The position numbers were made by a program, and so were the translations under genes. 64,000 bases of DNA, from assembly GCA_965202585.1 (NCBI GenBank), contig OZ241826.1, positions 71,610,001 through 71,674,000 on the forward strand, written 5' to 3'. The notes under the pieces are model-generated. The model made no database searches, had not been told where the DNA came from, and saw only the letters and a list, made by a program, of their open reading frames with translations. Below are positions 12,008-62,126 of the stretch, piece after piece (position 1 is the first letter of the stretch; the number at the start of each line of letters is the position of its first letter). The DNA is from Thalia democratica. Its lineage: Eukaryota.

Positions 12008-13411
12008 TTACTTAAAGCATGGCTGTACAATTTCATCCCAAGCTTTAACCCATGTTCTGCCTCTAAATCTATCAACTTCAAGCCTGAACTTGTTGGCCTT
12101 TGTGCTTTTAGCCTCTGTCATATCAACTAGCAAATCACATATTTGCTGTTTGAGCTCATTGGAGTTTCTAAAAACATAACCATTTTCACCATGGCGCACT
12201 AGCTCATCTAGACAATTAAAATCAAGTGCAAGAACTGGAAGTTGTGAGCCAAACATGTCAACAACTTTCATTGGGAGGTCCAAACCACTAGAAGACGAAT
12301 GCAAACTCACACCATAATCTGATGAAGCAAGTATCTTGGGATAATCATCTGCTTCAAGCCACGGAGTAACAATCTCAACATGATTCCAATTTTTTGTTTC
12401 TATAATTTTTTTGTAATAGGCCTTTTTAGGTCCTTTACCAGTAACAACACAGAGCACATCAGGCAACTTGTTTGATGTTATTTCACTGTTTTCTGCATCA
12501 AACTTGTCTAAAGCATCAATAAGAATTTGAAAATCTTCATCTTCAGTCCAACTGGTACTGCTAATTAAAATTACAGGACATTTTTTCCTACGTTCAACTT
12601 CATCCTTTTCATTAACAAAAGTAATTTTATTGTTAGACAGTTCATCATTGCTTTGAAACTGGGGATAGTTTTGAGCAAGTTTTTCAAACAAATCATGCTT
12701 CTCTCTCAAAGATATAGGTTTGAATAAGGGCCCTGGTCTATCATGCATAACTGATGCACTTATTTTCCAGTTTCTATACAGATCATCACACATAGCTTTT
12801 GTTACACACAAATTAGCAGAAGAAAGTTGACCCAATAATTCTTCATATATTTTAGAAGCTCTTACCAAAAGATGATCAATTCCTAATTTCAAAGCAAGAA
12901 TGGAATAGCCATAGTTATGCCAATCAATAATCAGTTTGCTTCTATTTACCATAGAAAAAAGTAAAGAAACTAAAAGCCCAGGAATGCACGGGGGATTTTG
13001 AATAAGTATGTACTCAGTAGGACCAATATTAAACAGTGTTGCGGACAAATAACATGCTTGTAGTATAAACTTCTCAACATATGCTATTACTTTTGGGCGA
13101 GAATTTGAAACAACAATTTCTTTCACATGAGCCTGTTGAATTTTTTCACAGTTCATAATAGAGCTGTGAGGCGTTGATCCTGCAAAACCAACCAAGTTAA
13201 CATCGTAATTGTGAGACGCAAGAGAAAGTGCATGGTACTGCATACGAGGACTTCTTCCAATATCACCCAAAACTACCACTGCCACTCTGTTCTTGCCCAG
13301 TTCAAAACACCATACTATAATTCTCCAAACAAATACTACTCCAAAAAAACAGGCAACAAACTTAACCACCAAAAACAAGAGGTAGAATATCAAAGTAAAC
13401 AATGTTATCAT
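12008..13411 (-). CDS. ALG1: Chitobiosyldiphosphodolichol beta-1,4-mannosyltransferase (GT33), 467 aa, single exon
   Basis: Uninterrupted ORF with an N-terminal hydrophobic anchor and ALG1 motifs VVLGDIGRSPRMQYHALSLA, IQNPP, IIDWHNYGYSIL, SSTSWTEDEDF, VTGKGP, GVSLHSSSSGLDLPMKVVDMFG and ELVRHGENG. Confidence 0.96.
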   Translation of the reverse strand: MITLFTLIFYLLFLVVKFVACFFGVVFVWRIIVWCFELGKNRVAVVVLGDIGRSPRMQYHALSLASHNYDVNLVGFAGSTPHSSIMNCEKIQQAHVKEIVVSNSRPKVIAYVEKFILQACYLSATLFNIGPTEYILIQNPPCIPGLLVSLLFSMVNRSKLIIDWHNYGYSILALKLGIDHLLVRASKIYEELLGQLSSANLCVTKAMCDDLYRNWKISASVMHDRPGPLFKPISLREKHDLFEKLAQNYPQFQSNDELSNNKITFVNEKDEVERRKKCPVILISSTSWTEDEDFQILIDALDKFDAENSEITSNKLPDVLCVVTGKGPKKAYYKKIIETKNWNHVEIVTPWLEADDYPKILASSDYGVSLHSSSSGLDLPMKVVDMFGSQLPVLALDFNCLDELVRHGENGYVFRNSNELKQQICDLLVDMTEAKSTKANKFRLEVDRFRGRTWVKAWDEIVQPCFK

Positions 13412-19288: not shown

Positions 19289-21282
19289 GACCACACAAAT
19301 GTATTTTTATAACAAAGTGCTAAACTTAAAATTTTGAAATATATTCAGTTGAGCCAGTATACTGAGTAAATTTAAAATGGTTTGAATCTGTGATTACTTT
19401 TACCTTTAGATTCTGCTGAACTAAGTTTAGTTGATATTTGTCATTTGGTTAAACTTAGTGTATTGTAGGTTAGTTTTGTGTATGTTATACTTGTTTAAGA
19501 TTAACTAGTTTTGGTTTGTTGACAAAAAAAACTTACATGTGTAGTTATATTAGTATGCAAACGTTTGTATTTACTTATTTCTAGTTAGTCAGATTTTGTT
19601 TACTACTTTTTTAAATGGAACTTATTTAAAAAGTCTTTGTTTTAGTTTTTGACTTGTTTAGATTTGTTTTAGTTGAACTTTATAATGTTTAGATGCTTCA
19701 GCTTTTTTAAAATATATATTTTCATTAGTGTGATTACAGTAAAATAGTTGTATATTCATCTTCTTTAATTCTTTCAATTTAAAGTTTAAAAACTAAAACT
19801 GAAGTTTATTAAAGTTTGTACAGTAAAAACAAAAAAAAAAACTGACTTGAACGACCAACTAAACTTAGCTCTTAGGATGTTAGTTTGATGAACCCTAACA
19901 TAAAAATGTAACTTACGTCATAAAAGTTTAATAACTTTGAAACAGTTAATAATACTTTAAAATTTTAACAATTAATTTGTGCGCTTTTGTTTGTATTTAA
20001 TATTTAAATATGCTGCTAAGCTAAATTTTTCTGTGAAATAATTGTAAATTTTCTTTTAATAACTAAAAAAAAAAACTCTTATAAAATTTTTGATTAAAAA
20101 AAGAAAATTTTATTTATTCTTCTATTTTTTGAAGTATTTGTTCTTATTTAATACTTTTTTTCTTACTTAATATTAAACATTTGTTATTAATTAATAATAA
20201 TATCTCATTTAACTACTTTTAAATTTTTTAATAACTTATATATTTTATATAAGGGAATAACAGTTATGGTTAAAAAATCTAAATAAGTAAGCAAAGTTTT
20301 ATAACACTGTTATAAATAAACAACAAAATGTAACAGAATTTTTTTTTTAATTTAAGTAAAATGTTTATCTTGTGTATTAAGCTTCAGAAAATATTTATTC
20401 AAAGAGTTTTAATTTCAAAAAGATATGAACTGTGTTTTTTATTATTTATAGATAACTCATTATAACAAATACATTAATTTTTTTTTATTATAACAAATAC
20501 AATAAAATAATCTACTTACGTGATCTTATATCTGCTATTTACATTTTATGCAATACAAATTAAAAGAAATATTTAGGATCTTTTGTTTTGGATACTGAAA
20601 AATAGATTGTTTAGTAACTAAATGACTGTTATTCATTTAAAACTTACAGAAGTAGTTCCAATTTATGAAAATTTAGACCGATGATACAATCAAAATTTAC
20701 AATACGTTCTAAACTAAAATTGTTTTAAACCAAAATTGAACTAAATTTCAAAGTTAATAAAATTATATCTGTAAACATTTACAAATAAACATGAGTTAAT
20801 GTAATAAGTTAGTATGTAATAAGTTAATGCGATTACTGGTATAAAAATTGATGTCTTTTATAGTAAATCAAAGTAAGATTTACGTAAGTAAGTTAAGATT
20901 TTTATTTTTTGTTGTTATATACTTATCGTGAAAGTTAAATGTGAATAAGTAAAAATAAAACAAGTAACTAGTATTTTTTAGAGAAAAGACAGTTTTAAAA
21001 ACTACTAAGCTATACATAAATTGCAATATAAACAGTATAAGCTTATAGTAAAACCATTTTTGATATTACGTTTCACTATGTTACTATTATTTGTTTACAA
21101 ACATGTTTGTGGAATTTTTTTTGTAGGTCAACTTTTATAACAAAAAATGATTTTAATCAAGCTAACAATGAAAGGAAGTGTTTTAGTATTTAAAAAACTT
21201 TATATGATAAAATTTTTCAAACACACAGACATTATTCAGTATTTTTACTGTATAAAAGTTAAAAATATGATAACAAGGATTA

Positions 21283-24200
21283 TTAAAAGCAAAGTGCACC
21301 AACACAGTCTTCAATGTCTATTATGTTGTTTCCACTATCTACAAATTCCTCATGTTTTTCTTTTAAACTTCTATGAAAATTACTTACTATGTAGTTAGCT
21401 TCAGTACTATTGAAGTTATACCTGTCAAGTTTATTTCTTATAAAATTTGTAAATGATAAAAATAAGTTATAATAATTTTACGGTTTATTTTGAGAGCGGT
21501 TTATTCGCAAATACCCAAGCTTTTGTAGTTATTTATAATTTGAAAATACTTAAAACAAAAAAAGATATCTTTTTTATTTAAAACATAAATAAAGTTTAGA
21601 TAGATGTTTATATAGATAGATAGTTGTTTTTGAAGGTTTATTCGACAGTAAATTAAAACTTGATTGTACGAAAATTTTTTTTAAATAAAGTTGTCTATAA
21701 ATTCTAAAGACAGTAAAAAGTAATTGATCCACTTCCGGTAAAGAATGTACTATTTGGTAAAAAGTTTAAACGTTTGTACGCTTTTAGAGATAAGTTTTAA
21801 AATGTTTTCGATGAAAAAAATAAAATGAATTAAAAATGTTTTAAAGGTTACAAATTTTGTAATAAACCATTTCATTATAAAGTTTTTTTTTAGTAGCAAA
21901 ATAGTACTTTAAATTTTCAACAATAAATAGATTTGATATGAACCTTGTATCAAGCTCATTTAAAACTTTTTATGCTAGCATAAAATAAAATTGTCATAAA
22001 ACATAATATTTTCTATTCTTACAACTAACTGTATTTTCATGATCGACAAGTCAATAAAATATGATGAGTTGAATCTCACAAATGTATTAAAAAACACTTG
22101 ACTCCGAAAAAAGTCTGTTTCATCGAAAAATTCCCAACCCTCATCGAAATCTTCCATTGATTCCTCACCAAATAAACTTTTCCTTAAACCGAGGAGTTAT
22201 AAATTTGAATAAGCATTAGTTTGTAAGAATATAAAATTTCTTTTTGAATTAATTGTGTTATACAGCAAAAAATAAAGAACTCATCACGAAATTGAAAGTA
22301 TTACAAATATTTATTTTGCTATTTTAGAACGAACTTTTGGAAAACTTTTTAAAACTTGTTTTGTTCATTTAAAGTTACAAAAAAAAATTTGATTTAAAAA
22401 GTTTCTGATGAACTTCTAATAAAAGAGCTTTATAAATTTTTTAGAGCTTAGTAATCTTTTTGAAGTTAGTAATTTAGAAAAAAGGTTATTTTAGTACTTA
22501 AGTATAAAAAACGTAAATCTTTTTACATGATGTAAATTTAACTTATTGTCTTTTATTAATGTCTATAAACATGCTAGTTATTTTTTCCTTTAATACTATT
22601 ATGCTGTAACCCACCGCATAACCATACATCCGTGCTTTCTAGCAAAATGCTTCAAGTAGCTTTCGTGATCGCAATAATGGACGATTCCGTTGTTCCAAAT
22701 CAACGTTGCTATCACTTCTAATGGATCGTATCCTTGCAACCCCGGGATATGTTCTGTTATTTTGTTGACTATCCCATCACAGTTTAGTCCAACTCTTGCG
22801 TCTAGCTGACGTACAAAGTCATAAACGATCTCGTAGTACTATTAAGCAAAAAAGGAAGTTTAAAAGTACATCATTTAAAATAATATTTTTTTAAAAATTT
22901 AGTTTTGTCATTTTGGAAGTTTTTGAAGGAAACATCAAATTAAAAAAGTATGTGAAAAATGTTTATGTAAATATATTACTGATAATTTTTAAATTTTATC
23001 TTAATTTTGTTTTAGGCTCATAATTTTTCACAAACTTAATCATATAAAAGTTTTGTAAATTAATTTTGATAAAAACTTATCATTTTCACTTGATCGTATT
23101 TATTATGTTAAACTTTTGCTTAGAAAAATGATTAACATAATACCATTACTTTTGTGACAAACAAATTTAATTTTGACCTCACTTAGAAACCTGTCATATG
23201 GAAACTGAGGCCTTAATTTTCTTTTAAGAAATTTATCTTTAAGGAAAAACTTTTCTGTCGTCTCTTTTATATTTTTCAAAAAGTAATGATTACTAGTAGG
23301 CATGCTCAACCAAGGTTTCAACCATCTTTCGCTCAAGTAGTTGTGATTGTCCGAAGACTTGCAGTGCTGTTTAATTTATAAAAAAAAATTCTAAAGAAAT
23401 TTTAGATGTGTTGCAACAAAGTTAATATCAAATCTTCGCTCGTATTTTGTTGTATAACTTAAACAAATATATTTTGCTTATATTTTTTATTCGAACAAAA
23501 ATACAATTACCTTTTTTTTGTTATATTTTAAGAAGTTTTATTAAAATACTAATTCGTTTTTGTTGTACTTTCGTAAAATATTTTGTATTTAGAATTAATT
23601 ACAAATCAATTTGAATTTTAAGTTACAAAAGTATGATAAAAAATAACCTAAAAACAAAATTAAATTATTAATAATACTAGTTTTTAAAACAATTAACATA
23701 CAAACAAAGCCTTGTGGTTTATATATTCCGTGAACCTTGTGTGCGGTTCAAGCAACTTTCTCAATGTGCTTTTATCTGCGAGATATTCTCTGACCAAAGT
23801 GGCCATTAAAGTTGGAAACATGAAATGAACGTGGTTGTGGGCATTACCCGGTGCATAGAAAGTCAACTGGACCTACATAAATAGTTTAAAAAAGTTTTGG
23901 TACATGTATAAATAAGTATAACAATTTTTTAATACTTAACAATAAAGTTAAACTGATAAATAAATCAGCAGAGTAATTATTTACTTAAAAGTAGTTTAAG
24001 TTTTGAACTTAAAGTTGTTTTTATTTACACAAGATTACGAGTAAACTGTTTTTGTTTTTATATTCATGTTTATTAGTGTAAATCTAAAATGAATGTTTTT
24101 AATGTTAATACACAATAATGTTTTTTCTTTATAAAGCAAGTTTTAAAAAGAAACAAAATTGATCATAAAGTATTTATTTAAAACTAAAATATTTAGCTTC

Positions 24201-27200
24201 AAACAACGCTATATTAGAAAAATTGTTACTTGTAAAATTTATTGACATTACTATAAAGAAATAATCAATAAAAATACAAAAATTAAGCATTATTTACTAT
24301 CTAATTTAAAAATGATTGAAAAAAAAAGTGCTTTTACTTAACCGATAAAATTTAGGTAAAAACATTTTGTCTAAAAAGAATTGAATTAAACTAACTTGCG
24401 CATGGGCTTTTGCAAGTCTCCATTTTTCATGTTTAGTTGTGTAAACATTGCATCTTCGATCTTTGAGTGATATTTCCTTGTTTTTATGAATCCTCAGCTG
24501 CTTCAGATCCCAGTAGAAGCCATCAAACAGTTTATAATCTTCAATGGGAAAATTCAAAACCCATTTTATTGAGGTGTCCGGTTCATCTGTAAAAGGAAGC
24601 AATAGTTATTATGACTGTTTAATAAAAAAAAAAAAAAATCAAAGGTTAGTTTTTAGAAATACGTTAAGCTAATGTAATAGCAAAATAGTTATTTTTTAGA
24701 AACAATATTAAAGTAAAAATTCTAGGCATCGCAATAAACAGTTTAACTTGATTTTTGTTTTAAATATTATAATAATTTTGATTTGGTATAAGACTTTTTT
24801 TGACGATTAGACAGTAACTAGCAAATGTTACATAGAGATAAAAGCTTTGTGATATGAAAACTTGTTTTTAATTAAAAAAGTATACAAAATTTTTCAGATA
24901 TTAGAAAAAAATTATCAGTTTCTAAAATTTTTAAAGGTAAACTATTAAACTCAATGTTTATCTTACTAAAATAACAAAATTTAATACCTTAATTTTAGGT
25001 GCATAGGGCTAAGGTCATTAAGTTAAATACAACTAATTTAATTACACACTAATTTAATATGCTCTTTTCAATTTTTCTTCTTTGATTTAGACTAGTTTTG
25101 CTTATAATCTTAACAATGTATAACTTATCACACTAACTGTAAAATTTAAATACTCTCTATGTTAAAAAACTCTTTACATATGAACTTTTTAGGAAATATA
25201 GCTACAAAGCTATAGCAAATGTTTATTGTAAGTTTTTTTTGTTACCACAACATCGTTTTGTTTTACAAATGTGTATTAGCTTTTAACTTTTAAAAATTTC
25301 TAAGAAAGATAGTTTCAAAACTTTTATAATAATATACAAGCTAGAATACTTTTCAAAATGTATAAATATACTTTATTATGTTAAGATTTTTTTTAAATGT
25401 TAGTATATAATTAAATAAACTATTTAAAAAGTTTATAACAAAACCTAAAGTGTTTTTTTAGTTTTGATTAACTTCACGCGCGCTGAAATAACAAAACAAC
25501 TTTCAGTTTTTCTTACCAGCAGAAGGTGGCTCAAGGCATCCGCACAAAGTTGTTTTCATGATGGACTTGTACAGCTGTTGGTCGCCCACCAGTGGGCACT
25601 TCTGCTTCCCGCCAACCAGCTTGGTGAATTCCCACAAGCTGCCAAAAGACACTTCAAATATGTAAGTAGAGTTTCGGTGCAGAAGGAAGTCTAAAGTGGA
25701 AGAAGATGACACCTGAGACACTTCTACCATGGGCCCTCCTTTGTATTTTGAGAACTTTGCTGTTTAAAGTTTGTGTGTGACAGTCATAATTTATTAGTAC
25801 TATATTTAATTCAAATTTTACTAAATAAAACTGTTGTTAATATTTTATTATTGTATAAAGTCGTTAAAACAACCTTTTGAAAATAATAATTTGATAGTCT
25901 TGCAAAAAAGACTCATACTTATTTATTAAAAACGATATTTAAAAACTAGCGACACTTTTAGTTGCTAGCTTAATTATATAGCTCTATAAGTTTACAAATT
26001 TGTAAAATCTAGAAAACAAATCAAATATGTTGAGTATTTAAATTTTTTTTTTACGTTTTTGTTTTGTTCATATTATAATATCAAACATGATTTACAACTA
26101 CCTAATCATACTATGTTGGTCTAATATCAATACGCACTAGTGCTAATAAACCTTATTTTATAACTTTACTAATAAACTAACAATATAGTCCAATAAAATA
26201 ATTATTACTTCGTCAAAAGTACATATAAAATTAAAAAATAAAAACTACAAAGAACAATCAATAATATTTATTCAAATTTTAAGATTGATTAAAAAACTAG
26301 TTTGTAGTAGTTGTTAATAAGAAGCTAATGGATATATTTTTATAAATTAATTTTTATAAGATATGGAACAATCTAAAATACACGTTTAAAATTTTATGAA
26401 GTCATTTAAAATAAACATAATATCAAAAAAACATAAGCCTTAATACTTTTCCGGAAAATTTAAAGCTTAGTTTTTTAAAACTTTTTCAACAAATAACTAA
26501 TGGATCAATATCTTGTAACTTGATCCTATAAGTGATGTCTTGAATTTAATATCTAAGTAGTAGCAGTACAAATTAAGATACTGATTTGAAAATGTTTACT
26601 TAACTGTAGTTAAGACAAGTATGTATTAAAATACTTCTTTAAGAAAAATACAATTTGAACCAAAATTTTGCTTTACTCGAAGCCACTTATAAACTGACAG
26701 ATTGTTTTGAAAGATAAGAGGTCAAATTTGAAAAAGTCTTATACTTACAACGTAACTTATATTTTTCAGTTCAGTTTTCAGCGTAAACATCTTTTGTAGA
26801 AATTAAAAAATTCGCGTAAAACATCTGTAATTTTTCAAAAATTTGAGGAAACTAAAATCAATTGCTAGATAGAAAACTAAAAATTAATCGATTAAGAAAT
26901 CGTGGCGCCAAAATGCATAAAAACTACATGTCGAGTTTGTTAAACTATATGTCGAGTTTATGCAAAGAAACGAATGCATAACAAAATCGATTTAATATTT
27001 TGCATTTTGTTTAAAGTTTTAGTTCTTTTATACTTAAGCTAAAAGTCTAGTTAAAATTATATAGGAACAAGTTATACTTACAAGAAGTTAGTTTCTTCGT
27101 CAACACCTCTATTATTTCAACAAACAGCATCAAGTGCAAGAAAAGGAACCATAACAACGTCGGTAACAGTCCAATTGAAAATACTGTTAATTGCTTTATT

Positions 27201-27235
27201 TTACTACATAGAGTTGTTCGAAGTTTTTGTTTCAT
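21283..27235 (-). CDS. Divergent lipoxygenase-like protein, about 487 aa. Exons: complement(join(21283..21421,22030..22182,22615..22838,23178..23366,23702..23872,24396..24586,25517..25759,27082..27235))
   Basis: The spliced translation gives LOX-ordered motifs: KWRLAKAHAQ (WxxAK), HNHVHF...LRKLLEPHTRFTEYINHKA, FPYDRFLSEYYEIVYDFV, IWNNGIVHYCDH (H-x3-H), and a C-terminal FHRSLKE...CVGALCF*. All seven introns are GT-AG and phase-consistent (1464 nt). Exon 1 is the least certain. Confidence 0.8.
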
Positions 27236-28704
27236 TGAACAACTTTTTATGAATCTTTTTATTAATGTTTTTACTTGTTTACCTTTAAAAACGTTACTTA
27301 ATAATCATAGATTATAGCATTAAAACATCTAAAAAGTTCTTAAACTTTGAACTTTATACATAAAATGATTTGAAGATTTATTCATTTCTTTCAATTATAA
27401 TTTTTTACTACTTTTTTGTTCATAAATTTCAAAAATAAATAACTAGAATTTTTTGTCTATAGTCGGGATTTCAGATTAGCAGTAGATGTTAAACTTAAAC
27501 CAAAACTAAAATAATGAACTAGTCCTGCTTGGTTTGTTGTTCTGAAAAGTATTTTTTGCAAAAAATGGTTTTAAACTCTAAGGCTATTTGAAATATACAT
27601 GTCTTTAGATATTGCATCATAAATAAAATAATAAGCTTAGTTTGAGTTTTACCTTAGCATTGGTAAACATTAATTAAATTACTAATTATTTTAAAAATTA
27701 TATAGCTACTTTCAAACTAACTTTGTAAAATATAAAAACTAGTTTATTAACCTTTAGCTAGCTTTTATAACATATATTTTTTCGTATTTTTTCTTATAGT
27801 ACAAAAAATAAAACTTTAGTATCTCCAAAACTATTAGCGAAACATAATTTAATCAAATATTTATATTTCTTATATTTTAACATTAGTTTTAACTTAAACA
27901 AACATGTGCTGACCTTACATACTGCTTGTTTTACATTTTGTAGTATATCATTTAAATGCTTTACAAATTAAATAATAAGTTTAGCTTAAGTATGTACTTA
28001 AACTTTTCTACTCATTTAGAAATATATTTTTATATGTATATACACTATGCAGTCTCTGGGAAAGTATATGCTCCAATTTAAAGTTTGTTGTAAACGATTT
28101 ATACTACAGTTGATGAGAAACATGCAAAACAAGAAAGTAATTTTTATAATTAAAATATAATAAATTGTTTGAGGCTGTAATCAGAGGGATTTGTTGTTAC
28201 GTCATTTATATGTAAACAAACATTAGGAAGTCTGGTGACAGAGCTATTTAACTTTTGGAATACAGGACTGCATTCATATGACTATGCTGTTTGTTTGTTA
28301 TTACTTTAGTCTTTCACTGAAATACTTATTCATAATGAGTTTGGAACAATGTTGTTTTTTATTAAATGCCTTTAAAAATATTAAGAATTTAACTGAATGC
28401 ATTTCGGGCACAACAATGTTTGAAAACATTAACCACCATATGGGTTTAAACTTTAGCCTTTTACAACAACAAACTTTTTAACATTTTCGATAGGCTTCAT
28501 AAAAAATTGTAATTTTTATTCTTAATTAAAAGCTATCCTGTATAAACAAAACAACAACATTTAAAAATCTAAAGAATGTTTTTCATTATGTTCAAAGTTT
28601 AACTTTACTACTACTAATCACTAAAAAAACATAACTTTTCTAAAGATCATACTTTCGATTTTATCTATTATTTTTGTGTTTTAAAGCAATACACTGGTAC
28701 AAAC

Positions 28705-56700: not shown

Positions 56701-59700
56701 TTTAAACACATTGCTATAAACATAATCTAATTTTAATAGCCAAATCTAGAAAAGTAACTTTTTAATGTTGACAGGTTAATTAAGTGCGTGTATGTTTATC
56801 TTAAAAATTTTGAAACACGATTTTAAACTATGTCCAACTCTGAAAGTTTTATGAATTTTACGGGTTTTAATAGGCGTTTTTTTAGATTAAACAGTGAACT
56901 TTTGAAGCTTTTCTATCTAAAAAACTAAACTTAAACTTGCATTTTTCAATAGACAGAAGTAATAAACTAATTAATAATTTGCACCACAAATACATAATAA
57001 TTACATTGCGGTGGCCTGTTCTAATTGACAATGCAATAGATATGCCAAACTGCTGGCGTTATCAACGAAAACGATTAGTGTTGATATTAGCAGGCGATAA
57101 TTGATGAGGTAGTGTGCAAAACATAAAACAATGTCTTTTGAGTACATTTCAAAAACTTTAATACCGCACAGCTTACATTTCGTTTTACCCTTTTCTTTCG
57201 AGTGAAGCTCACACTAATACTATAATACCTCCAACAAATGCTTGAAAATTTTTAATTTTCTTTTTAACTTTCAGATTTTTTACCACCATCGTTACTTGTT
57301 GTAAATCTTTCGTTCAACGCATTTAAGAAGATTGACAACTTGGCGTTTGGAAACAATGAAAAATTGCGAGTGCTTAACGTGAGTAATAACCTTGCAACAA
57401 GTTCGGAGTCTATTTTCGACGATCGAACTTTTAAGCCGATGGTTAATCTGAGAAACCTCGACTTATCAAACACCTACTGCGGGTCCATTCCCAGGAACGC
57501 GTTTTCATTTTCAAAAAAGCTGCAAAAGTTAAACTTGAGGAACACGTACCTCAGAAAGCTTCCTTTGTTTAAAGCAGCTAGCAAGCAAACTTTTTCTAGT
57601 TTAGAAAACGCCAGCATCGGAATCGAAAACGAAACTTTAACGCGAGCCGAGTGGAATAACCCGGTCTTAAAAGTCTTGATCTTGTCAAACAATAGACGCT
57701 TGAAGCTCAAACAAACTTTGTCCGAAGTTTCGTTTCCGCCGAGCTTAGTTCACTTGGACTTGAGCGGAGTTCAGTTTCAAACAATTAACTCAAAAGTTTT
57801 CTCCAATTTGAACAACTTGGAAGTTTTACGCTTGAACAAGTGCTACATAACCTCGATAACATCGAATGCGTTATCTGGTTTGGACAGTTTGGTGGAGTTT
57901 TCCGCTTTCACCAACGGGCTGAGAAAAGTACCGGGCCTGCCGAAAAACTTAAGAGCTTTGAATTTGTCAAACCACAGAATAACGACCTTAACAAATAGCT
58001 CAATTAAACCTGGCATTTCAGACCTCAGCAAACTTACGTCAATCGATCTGAGTTTGGGAACAATTAAAGAAATATATGATTCAACTTTCTCTGAAATGTC
58101 AAAGCTTGAAACATTGAATTTGTCGACGAACCATATTTGTACCATAACAAAAACGACGTTTAAAATAAAGTGAGTTTTTATATAAACTTTTTGCGTAATG
58201 TAAAAAAGTCCTAAAATTTAAAGCTCTATTGTTTTGCTTAATTCTTAAATGTTATGAATTAAAATTAAAACTTAAAATTTATAGGTTTTTCAATGTAAAC
58301 TAAATCTTTCAATCAAATTTAGTTTTAGTTTCGTTGTTTAAAAAATATTACACGTATTGAAGCTTTAAAAGTTTAGATTTTTGTAAATGCAATGCTTTTA
58401 ATTTTTATCAATACAAAACCATACTATTATATGAGTAAAGCAATTAAAGCACTTAGAGGTAATTAAAGATGGTTTTATAGACAAAAAAGTAATTTTTATG
58501 TAGTAAACAAAGGAAATTATAGTTTATTTTACAAAATTTAAGTTTTGTAGCAAACAAAATATAGACGAGTACTTTTTTGAATTAACTTACTAATTAAAGT
58601 TTTTAAAATGTTCGTAACAATTTTATTCATTTAACAGTATTATTTTAAACTTCAACTTTTAATTTTACTATATTAAGTCTAAAATAAGTAAATGAAAGTA
58701 CCTTTTTAAGTATATATATGATCTGTTTTGATGTTTAAATTTAAATCTGTTATGATGAACCCGGTTTACCCAACTTAAAACCAATTAAGTCTTTTTGAAG
58801 CTATTTTTCACGTTGACCAGTCAAACTTAAAATTGAAAAGCATACTTTCACACATCTTTTACTTCCACGCACAGCAATCAATCAAACTTAAAGTCGCTGG
58901 ATCTGTCGAGCAACAGGATAAAAAAGCTGCAAGCCCATCCGTTCAGCGGCCACGGAAAGCTCACCCAGTTGCACCTGGAAGGCAACAGAATTGCAAACAT
59001 CGACGACACGACGCTACACGGCTTAGAAGGTCTTCTGCGGCTCGACGTGTCCGACAACAACTTGAAGAAAGTGACACTTGGAGCGTTCGAAAGCCTGTGC
59101 AATCTGCAAGTGAGAGAGATTTGTTGTATTATGTTGAATTGGCGCGTGCGTGCTGTGTATACAGACCAATACACCGTTTTCAGTCGTAAGAAGATTTGCT
59201 TGACGTTAATGACAATAACTTTTTTGCCAGGTCGAAACAGCTTAATCGTTTTAAAAGCCTATAACAACACAAAGTTGTATTGTGCAAATTAAATTTTCCT
59301 TATTAAAAAAGCTTTTACAGCATTTTTTATTTATTTACTTTTTTATTGTGATTCCGACCACTTTAAATCATTTTATTGTATACCGCGCAAACCTATTATG
59401 TAAGTCAAGTCATACAAGTAGTACTTGTCAAGATGTATGCGAAAAATAACATTAAAGGCTTGATTTTATGCTATTAAGTATTTATTTTGACTCATACACT
59501 TGAACGCTTTCACTTTTTATTTGATATCTATGACGTAAAAACAAAGCAGTATGTGTATAATAATCGTAACGAATTAAAGTGATGTATACTTGTTGAAATA
59601 AGAGTGTATAACTTTTTAGTGATTTATTTCAACATACGTTTTTCACTTTTTAACCAAGTTCAAATGTATAGCTATTCAGGATAGATTTGAAAACAAAATT

Positions 59701-62126
59701 ATTAATTGTAGTATAGTCAATAAATGAAAAATAAAGGTAATCATTAAATTTATTCAACTTCGACAATTTAAAGATTGATAATTACAAGCTGTTTAATTTT
59801 TCTTTTTATAATTTGCGTTTAACAGACCTTTTCCAAACTGTATAAGAGCCCAATCACGTAAAATTAATAAAAAATTACTTCTAACGTCATGAAAACAAAA
59901 ACAAATGCGAAAACTTTTAAAGAAATTCTAAATATACAAAAAAATATTTTCAGGTGCTTTTTTTGAACAATAACAAAATTAAATTCATCACAAAAAAACA
60001 TTTTACTTCTATGGCAAATCTTCGCAACATCGAGCTTTACAATAACATGTTGGAAAAATTTGAGCCTGAAAGACCATTAAATCATTTGGCTAATCTAGAT
60101 TTGAGCCAAAACAGAATTGTTAAAATGCCGAATCTAGAGGCACCCAGTTTAAAAAGATTAATCCTCAAGAACAACTCCTTAACGGTGAGTTTGAATTAGA
60201 GTATTTCCTAACAACGTACACAAGTTTTTAATAAAGACTATTTACACATGTATATATACATAGAAAATCACTTCTCAAATGTTTTTTGGAACGAGAGCTT
60301 TGAAGTACTTGGACCTAAGTGAAAACAATAAGCTGAAAATAAAAAGTTTTAACGTGTTTAAACCACTGAAGTATCTTGAATATTTAGACACGTCGAATAT
60401 AAGAAAATTATCTGGTTTTGTAACCTTTGAGATGCCTCATTTGAAAAAACTTAAAGTTGAGGAAACACAGGTTAGTATATTATAATTTATTTTTAAACTG
60501 TAAACACTTGCAAAAAACAAGTTTAAATCAACTCGAATGTTTTGAAATTTTTTATAGTTAAGTACTGATAATCAAGTTAGTGTATTTGTATAAAATTACT
60601 AGAAAAAAAGTTCAATAGAGTTACTCACTTAAAAGATATATTTTTAAATAAATAAAACATAATATGTTGTTTATTGAAAGATAAAAAAAAAATGCTCAAA
60701 AAGTTTGATCTAAGGACCTGGTGTACGAAAAAATCTTTCGGTTATCGAGTCATATAGTCTAAGTTTATTTTAGTAAACAAAATTAATGAAACTTTGCTAT
60801 CAAAATAAAGTTTGTTTGAATATTTTAATTCCTGATACTTTAAAATTTATAATTAAAAATGATACTTATCCTGTTAAAAAACTCTAAAGTCAAAACTTAG
60901 GAATGAAAATTAATTTTGATCATTGAACAACAAATTTTCTTATCAACATTCAGTTTTAATGAAAAAACTTTATTTATGCAAAAAGTATGCGGATTTAAAA
61001 TTGCTTTAAATTATCAGTATATATGAGTTTACTAATTAAAAACTGAAGAAAAAAATATGTAAGTCTGATTTTCATTATCCTTAATCACTAGATTGATCTA
61101 GTACTACGTAAGTTGTTTAAATATTTATTCGTCAAAGTAAAAAGCTACAGTATGGCATCTTTTTAAAGAGACTAGCGTTTTACAAAAAAATAAGTTGTTC
61201 TATTTTTGCTGTGTAACTAAAAGTATATTTAGTAATAAACTTTTTAAAATTTTTAAACTACGTTTTTCAGACGCATAATCTTCTTTTTTACAATTTTTTA
61301 AAAATTGTGCTAATAAATAGTTTTGAATTAAGTTTTACAACACTAATTAACTATTAATTTTTATCGAAAACAGATTGATGACCGTTTGATTTACAGTGCA
61401 AAACTCAAAGATCTTTTACCAAATCTTGAAGTACTAAGTTTGTTATACAACCAAATCACCATTATCAAGCCTCATTTTTGGAACAACCTGCCAAAGAGTA
61501 TCGAAACAGTTGCACTCGGTTGGAATCATTTCGACTGCAGTTGCGAAATTGCTCCGTTTGTCAATTGGATATATAGTGGAGACCAACTAACATACGCTTT
61601 TATTTCCAATGATCAATACCTTTGCGTCGGAAAACACTTCGGATTTTCGATGTTTGAAGTTTTTGCCGATCTGAACTGCACGACGGAAAGCACTACGACT
61701 TTTCCGTCACCTTCAAAGGGTCCTCCCTTCGTATCCTCGACAAGCGCTTCGAATGTAACAAGCAGTAAAGTTGCTATGAGCCTCACAACCCACGCAACAG
61801 CAACGATCACTACGAAACCTAGGAGCGCTTTCGACAGCGGTAACGTCTATCTCATCGGAATAATTTTGCTTTCTCTTTCACTTACAGTTCTACTCGTTTT
61901 GCTGATACACCGTTTTTACAAGACCCGAGCTGCACAATCATCACCGGCTGTCGACGCCAAGTTGCCAAAGGAAAACTTCGAGCTAGAAAAGCTCAACCCT
62001 CTGAAACAAGCTTCTTCTTCTGATGAAAGCATCACTATAACTTCAACGAGCGACGGCAATGACTCAGGCAATGCTAATTTTATTGAAGTGAGTGTCAACA
62101 AACAACGTAGCTTACTTGTTTCGTGA
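50783..62126 (+). CDS. Type I membrane leucine-rich-repeat protein (Toll-like ectodomain, no TIR), about 954 aa. Exons: join(50783..50836,52733..52882,54332..54474,54894..55090,57275..58169,58875..59109,59954..60184,60264..60470,61374..62126)
   Basis: Signal peptide MKSFNKAKSRYKCFALHL|VLLLLSADGA, LRRNT (CVPMCRC...VNCS), more than 20 LxxLxLxxNxL repeats, LRRCT (WNHFDCSC...YLC...LNC), Ser/Thr-rich stalk, TM (VYLIGIILLSLSLTVLLVLLI) and a tail of about 70 aa. Eight phase-consistent GT-AG introns. Confidence 0.9.
60665..60757 (+). repeat. Short dispersed repeat, copy C (3'-truncated), in the last LRR intron
   Basis: GGACCTGGTGTACGAAAAAATCTTTCGGTTATCGAGTC matches copy B. Confidence 0.7.

Follow-up and report, generated by a model that had tools for sequence, protein, structure and literature searches.

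The 64-kb window analysed here, which is the whole stretch of Thalia democratica DNA from contig OZ241826.1 (positions 71,610,001 to 71,674,000), carries on its minus strand a gene resembling those of lipoxygenases (LOXs). The gene is real and expressed. With a probability of about 80%, its product is a membrane-tethered protein of 487 amino acids (aa) that has no PLAT domain, adopts the fold of the LOX catalytic domain and belongs to a small tunicate family.

The stretch that had been flagged in a preliminary description (25517-27235) comprises exons 1 and 2 plus intron 1 of this gene. The coordinates proposed there for both exons (27235-27082 and 25759-25517) were right according to the gene model and the RNA, and the expected protein length of about 487 aa was also that of the final model. 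This model has eight exons on the minus strand, and all of its introns are of the GT-AG type. Its features are as follows.

27235-27082, minus strand: exon 1, from the ATG at 27235 to a GTAAGT donor; basic N terminus (aa 1-15), hydrophobic segment (aa 16-42) and the start of a linker. Basis: RNA contig over 27178-27082, a homologous exon in each of the paralogs C2, C8 and C9, and aligned N termini of tunicate homologs.
27081-25760, minus strand: intron 1, GT-AG, 1322 nt, spliced out in the RNA contig.
25759-25517, minus strand: exon 2, acceptor ...AAACAG, donor GTAAGA; aa 52-132, basic linker and start of the predicted LOX-fold domain. Basis: RNA contig.
24586-24396, minus strand: exon 3; aa 133-196, with the motif LAKAHAQ at its end. 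Basis: RNA contig and alignment.
23872-23702, minus strand: exon 4; aa 197-253, with a helix rich in His, HNHVH (H208/H210/H212), and the motif PHTRFT..IN common to LOXs. Basis: RNA contig, profile alignment to ALOX15B 362-429, and three paralogs.
23366-23178, minus strand: exon 5; aa 254-316, with a weak donor, GTCAAA, borne out by an RNA join to 22838.
22838-22615, minus strand: exon 6; aa 317-390, with the second His motif HYCDH (H370, D373, H374). RNA covers 22838-22713, and 22615 is the probable 3' end.
22182-22030, minus strand: exon 7; aa 391-441. The probable 5' end, 22182, was taken from paralog C2; RNA shows the 3' end spliced to exon 8.
21421-21283, minus strand: exon 8; aa 442-487 and the stop codon, with the conserved C terminus ...LCF. 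Basis: RNA contig.

The RNA came from one run, the marine metatranscriptome X1, in which two spliced contigs matched the LOX-like gene. The first, of 1017 nt, consisted of 27178-27082, 25759-25517, 24586-24394, 23870-23702, 23366-23178 and 22838-22713, and the second joined 22064-22028 to 21419-21270. The 2-nt offsets between these contigs and the gene model correspond to a GT that can be placed on either side of the junction. Six of the seven exon junctions were supported, including the one at the weak donor of exon 5 and the 27082|25759 junction, which the preliminary description had singled out for checking in RNA and which was seen directly in a spliced contig. The junction between exons 6 and 7 was the only one without RNA coverage. 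It was provisionally placed at 22615|22182 because a clean GTAAGA donor and a CAG acceptor are present at the homologous sites of the chromosome-2 paralog and because the family-wide CMxMR motif is thereby restored.

A few percent of the positions in the RNA contigs differed from the window; among the 15 coding differences listed, 13 were synonymous, indicating that the reading frame is under purifying selection. The exons had a GC content of 38% and the introns of 21%, in a very AT-rich genome (20-37% in the window). The environmental marine transcripts of X1 that align with window positions 21270-27265 were 97-98% identical to the LOX-like gene, and therefore this species or a very close relative was present in plankton-type material and expressed the gene there. 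No entry for the 487-aa protein of the window itself was found in the protein databases searched.

The first exon of the gene encodes the N-terminal basic stretch and the hydrophobic segment of about 27 residues that the preliminary description had reported. Five Lys or Arg residues within 14 positions are followed by an uncharged hydrophobic run from L16 to I42, with a proline at position 25, and then by another five Lys or Arg residues within 15 positions. The best 19-residue Kyte-Doolittle mean was 2.27, at residue 27, compared with 0.83 for the next-best segment of the protein. The profile thus gave an N-terminal segment of 27 residues, the length of a transmembrane segment, and it was conserved in 12 sequences. 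In all 12 of these the proline within the hydrophobic run was invariant, and the hydrophobic span was 25-35 residues. The same N-terminal layout was found in paralogs C2, C8 and C9, each of which has it in an upstream exon, and in eight of eight full-length homologs; the homologs that share this N terminus come from Clavelina, Phallusia, Styela, Ciona and unnamed transcripts. The 1017-nt RNA contig begins in codon 20 of exon 1 and covers residues 20-51, including most of the hydrophobic segment. The ATG at 27235 is preceded, 24 codons upstream, by an in-frame stop, and no further ATG lies in between. These results support exon 1 as a real spliced exon that would encode a conserved hydrophobic membrane anchor; the insertion itself we infer.

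A relationship to LOXs was indicated by a profile and by a predicted structure. Profile A1, made from ten family members, was searched against the PDB at E <= 10, and all 14 matches were LOXs. The best match was human ALOX15B, at only E 0.0067 and 18 bits over about 68 residues, and the matched region contained the iron-ligand His helix and the PHTR(Y/F)T..IN motif. The structure was modelled for the Clavelina homolog P0006, whose full-length identity to the window's protein is 34% (44% in exon 2). The AlphaFold2 (AF2) model of P0006 had a pLDDT of 74 and a pTM of 0.78. In a Foldseek search with this model, the top 50 matches were all LOXs, with E values down to 4.5e-8 and TM scores of 0.60-0.67, and VIA-align superposed it on LOX with a Z score of 24.8 and a root mean square deviation of 3.2 Å over 413 residues. 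Residues 45-481 of the model were superposed on residues 138-663 of rabbit 15-LOX, a range that starts shortly after the beginning of the catalytic domain and runs to the end of the protein. The AFDB cluster and ESM Atlas neighbours of P0006 were likewise all LOXs. The remote profile similarity and the predicted fold of the homolog support the view that the window gene encodes a very divergent LOX-fold protein. The top matches of an HMMER search with exon 6 only, P0001 and P0002, were low-complexity repeat proteins and were rejected as spurious. Among the short LOX-fold matches in AFDB was A0A3P9N3A2, a 423-aa fish protein named 'Si:dkey-17e16.9' (E 8.5e-5).

The absence of a PLAT domain, as claimed in the preliminary description, was also supported. 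A genome scan with PF01477 found no PLAT exon in the window, upstream exons encoding such a domain being the outcome that would have spoken against the claim, and none near the three paralogs. On the window's contig, the closest PF01477 match was some 345 kb distant, 3' of the gene. The scan did find PLAT exons at nine canonical LOX loci in this genome, located 3-9 kb from the exon with the matched His helix. In the RNA, the anchor exon is joined directly to the first domain exon, and in the P0006 model residues 1-44 align to nothing while the remainder aligns to the LOX catalytic domain.

The metal of LOXs is bound by HxxxxH on one helix, HxxxN or HxxxH on another, and the carboxylate of a C-terminal Ile. 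Conserved in the family are H208 and H212 in HNHVH, H370, D373 and H374 in HYCDH, and Cys-Phe/Tyr at the C terminus. In comparisons with LOX exons of the same genome and with ALOX15B, the first of these His residues falls on the first ligand of LOXs, and the alignment has no gaps through the KLL..PH motif. H370 and H374, aligned by eye, are located at i and i+4, the spacing of the second LOX ligand pair. Across the full-length family members the penultimate Cys is invariant and the terminal residue is Phe or Tyr. The C terminus of the model superposes on that of LOX (residue 481 onto 663) but is poorly modelled there (pLDDT < 50). From these residues a metal centre is plausible, though it would not be the canonical LOX one.

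Several observations weigh against the reading of the gene product as a membrane-tethered LOX-fold protein. The ATG at 27235 is outside the coverage of the RNA contig. PF00305 gave no match for any single exon or for the full-length homologs P0006, P0011 and P0015, and a six-frame genome scan with PF00305 gave no match at the LOX-like locus even at E <= 10; the same scan returned about 15 canonical LOX loci, with up to 65 bits. Identity to every LOX was only about 10-15%, and the fold comes from a predicted model of a 34%-identical homolog, built on no more than 10 sequences. The second His of helix 9 is located one residue earlier than in LOXs, giving HxxxH and not HxxxxH, and the protein ends in Cys-Phe instead of the LOX Ile. 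Because of the shifted His and the Cys-Phe C terminus, dioxygenase chemistry is not assured. The LOX-like nature given in the preliminary description was upheld only by the remote profile similarity and the predicted fold of the homolog but not by Pfam.

Compared with the canonical animal LOXs (ALOX15, ALOX12, ALOX5, ALOX15B and coral 8R-LOX), the tunicate family has the same predicted catalytic fold, from about residue 138 of those enzymes to the C terminus (Z scores of 24-25). The LAK...H helix, the PHTR(Y/F)T..IN motif, a His at the first ligand position of helix 9, an HxxxH that by eye corresponds to the second ligand helix, and a functionally constrained C terminus are common to both. The tunicate proteins differ in that they are without a PLAT domain, have a catalytic domain shorter by about 90 residues and carry an N-terminal hydrophobic anchor. 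They also lack a PF00305 match, their second helix-9 His is shifted, and they end in Cys-Phe/Tyr and not Ile. The canonical LOX genes of this genome encode W-x-Y-H-Y-L-Y-T-H at the iron-ligand helix, with an exon that starts right before the Trp, and many of the copies are clustered on contigs C2 and C4.

According to reviews, in LOXs of eukaryotes the beta-sandwich at the N terminus (PLAT) mediates membrane binding, and most bacterial LOXs are without it; some prokaryotic LOXs are anchored to bilayers by an additional alpha-helix that is not part of the catalytic domain (PMC10889196, PMC13319228). The tunicate family resembles the bacterial and cyanobacterial mini-LOXs, such as Cyanothece CspLOX2 and the Pseudomonas aeruginosa LOX, in having no beta-barrel, in its similar size and in the predicted fold (Z score of 24.1). 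Both have an N-terminal helical element in place of PLAT. The bacterial mini-LOXs, however, are soluble or peripheral proteins with canonical iron ligands and Pfam matches, whereas in the tunicate family the segment is hydrophobic throughout and of transmembrane length, enough for an integral anchor, and there are introns and a changed ligand pattern.

The orientation of the putative anchor was judged mainly from the charges on its two sides. According to the positive-inside rule, a basic flank tends to stay cytosolic. In the preliminary description the segment was regarded as a type II signal anchor (N-in/C-out), which would place the LOX-like domain in the lumen of the endoplasmic reticulum (ER) or Golgi or at the cell surface, where it would produce extracellular oxylipins. 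This orientation appears doubtful. In the window's protein the N-flank carries a strong positive charge, +5 in 14 residues, as a type II anchor would have it, but the C-flank is equally basic (+5). The net charge of the C-flank was at least that of the N-flank in eight of nine family sequences. Lys and Arg after the segment were constant, at +4 to +5 in nine of nine, and the N-flank ranged from +1 to +5, so that the C-flank is the conserved basic side family-wide. In some members of the long subfamily the segment is preceded by 40-65 residues, whose translocation would be more difficult, a point in favour of type II; long hydrophobic anchors, on the other hand, tend to insert N-out. By the positive-inside rule, the constant basic cluster after the segment weakly favours an N-out/C-in orientation, as in microsomal P450s, or a hairpin, that is, the opposite of the type II assignment.

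Secreted LOXs occur in fungi and bacteria, which lends the lumenal location some precedent. The three N-x-S/T sequons of the window's protein, however, are without conservation in the homologs, and Cys is conserved at only two columns, with no conserved disulfide pattern. The data thus gave no support for choosing the type II orientation or the lumenal or cell-surface location that goes with it. A catalytic domain facing the cytosol, whether through a single N-out span or a hairpin, would have roughly even odds, and it seems somewhat likelier than a lumenal one; a lumenal or exoplasmic domain is a tentative possibility. Microsomal P450s have a lipid-oxidising domain that is tethered to the ER by a single N-terminal hydrophobic segment with a basic cluster behind it. 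The pattern of anchor and basic flank in the tunicate family is similar, but the fold and the cofactor are unrelated, and the likeness, which involves a predicted topology, is an architectural analogy only.

The invariant proline in 12 of 12 sequences raises the possibility of a monotopic hairpin, a Pro-kinked re-entrant anchor that would keep the domain on the cytosolic leaflet of a membrane or on lipid droplets. The two basic flanks and the hydrophobic span of 25-35 residues fit such an arrangement. The arm before the proline is only about 9-10 residues long, however, and the AF2 model of P0006 shows one helix from residue 2 to 39, at low confidence; we consider the hairpin rather unlikely. 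Much less likely is a cleaved signal peptide followed by secretion of a soluble protein, in spite of the N-terminal position and the basic n-region. With about 27 residues, the hydrophobic run exceeds what a signal-peptide core would have, being roughly twice an h-region, and what comes next is the conserved basic cluster and not a small-x-small cleavage site.

The genome contains three paralogs of the window gene (C2:48555485, C8:47659096 and C9:19192426), each with its own anchor exon, in the following regions.

C2:48553000-48562999, paralog region with anchor exon.
C8:47651000-47670999, paralog region with anchor exon.
C9:19184500-19204499, paralog region with anchor exon.

The C2 paralog is, to judge from its 81% identity in exon 4, a recent duplicate. 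All named homologs are from tunicates, namely Clavelina (three genes), Phallusia, Styela and Ciona, and the rest are transcript or metagenome contigs without a name. The protein database searches gave no named homolog from outside the tunicates. The homologs are annotated as uncharacterized, except for one with the automatic name 'Lipoxygenase domain-containing protein'. In the maximum-likelihood tree the family was split into two subfamilies with support of 100/100. The window gene and the C2 paralog are of the short form (about 480-530 aa); paralogs C8 and C9, together with the Ciona gene, are of the long form (about 570-610 aa), which also occurs in Clavelina. Since both forms occur here and in ascidians, both predate the divergence of this species from the ascidians. 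Introns of the Ciona long form are located at the boundary between exons 3 and 4 and probably also at that between exons 4 and 5 (from the ends of high-scoring segment pairs, to about +/-3 aa), indicating that at least some introns are older than the split between the subfamilies.

No description was found in the literature on the family, on tunicate LOXs, on membrane-anchored LOXs or under the homolog gene identifiers. The proteins apparently form a small branch of the LOX superfamily that is anchored, invisible to Pfam and restricted to tunicates. The preliminary description had spoken of an undescribed system; this is right in that no paper was found, but it is overstated, as homologs are already in the databases as uncharacterized tunicate proteins.

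An old horizontal acquisition with later gain of introns had also been suggested as possible. In the version considered here, a bacterium with a short, PLAT-less LOX-like gene would have passed it to a tunicate ancestor, and the introns and the anchor exon would have been gained later. The nearest ESM Atlas clusters by features were indeed bacterial, about 450-580 aa long, PLAT-less and partly Pfam-positive (score 0.95), and the best structural row was a 500-aa Myxococcota cluster (TM 0.78/0.75), although in this Atlas a row from another domain of life is no sign of gene transfer and a chordate 5-LOX cluster reached TM 0.77 in the same search. The top AFDB cluster match was an unnamed 506-aa protein; the best profile match in the PDB, on the other hand, was human ALOX15B. 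The VIA-align Z scores of 24.8 for animal and 24.1 for bacterial LOXs amounted to a tie, with lower values for fungal (about 20-22) and plant (about 20) enzymes. The restriction of named homologs to tunicates would be in line with a transfer, but the family motif [VT]H[FY][CSA]DHx[ST]Y[LI] was present in no GTDB genome: nine stretches were matched in the scan and none was confirmed, and no close bacterial relative of the family was found by it. Both subfamilies contain introns, and at least one intron is at approximately the same position in the window gene and the Ciona long form, which also argues against the transfer.

The intron positions of the window gene's His exon are not shared with the canonical LOX genes of its own genome, the boundaries of the His-helix exons being off by about 8-9 and 14 residues. 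This difference could be counted in favour of horizontal transfer. As a test of vertical descent from canonical LOX genes, however, the differing boundaries gave no support either way; they are compatible with a deep divergence during which introns were turned over, or with introns gained independently. At such low identity to every LOX, a joint tree would not be trustworthy. Horizontal acquisition is thus neither favoured nor disfavoured by these data, and of the possible origins we regard it as a quite unlikely one; the structural tie and the GTDB result leave the original suggestion without backing.

Elsewhere in the window, an uninterrupted open reading frame of 467 aa at 12008-13411 on the minus strand matched glycosyltransferase group 1 (PF13692, E 6e-12; PF00534, E 1.1e-11). 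This gene of GT1/GT4 type has no introns, in an animal genome that is rich in them; it might be a retrogene or have been acquired horizontally, or it might simply be a normal single-exon gene. A long open frame with leucine-rich repeats (LRRs) was located at 57340-58173 on the plus strand (LRR_8, E 3.4e-25). Another long open frame, at 61386-62126 on the plus strand, had a weak LRR match, and the two are probably exons of one or two LRR genes.

In the mechanism proposed for the LOX-like protein, the hydrophobic segment encoded by exon 1, with its invariant proline and the basic cluster after it, would hold the enzyme permanently on a membrane, presumably by insertion. This permanent anchor would replace the reversible, Ca2+-dependent targeting of canonical animal LOXs by a PLAT/C2-like domain. 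Residues from about 45 to 487 would form a trimmed LOX catalytic domain which, like LOXs, ends at a conserved C terminus, and the histidines kept at or beside the LOX metal-ligand positions (H208, H212, H370 and H374) may bind a metal. With its trimmed LOX domain and retained histidines, the protein would most likely be a non-haem metal enzyme acting on membrane lipids, with polyunsaturated acyl chains or their hydroperoxides as candidate substrates. A further-reaching version is more speculative and, in our view, improbable: a tunicate-restricted, permanently membrane-embedded LOX branch, perhaps derived from bacteria, in which the re-spaced His and the invariant C-terminal Cys would form a metal centre different from that of every characterised LOX, for lipid chemistry other than dioxygenation on or inside an organelle membrane.

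To our knowledge, all characterised animal LOXs are soluble PLAT-domain enzymes that associate reversibly with membranes. A chordate family that has exchanged PLAT for an integral anchor and has an altered ligand pattern would extend the range of architectures known in the superfamily, and the purpose of PLAT-based regulation could be tested on a natural example. Surveys based on Pfam miss this branch of the LOX superfamily entirely. The family would also point to unexplored lipid chemistry in tunicates, among which Ciona is open to direct genetics.

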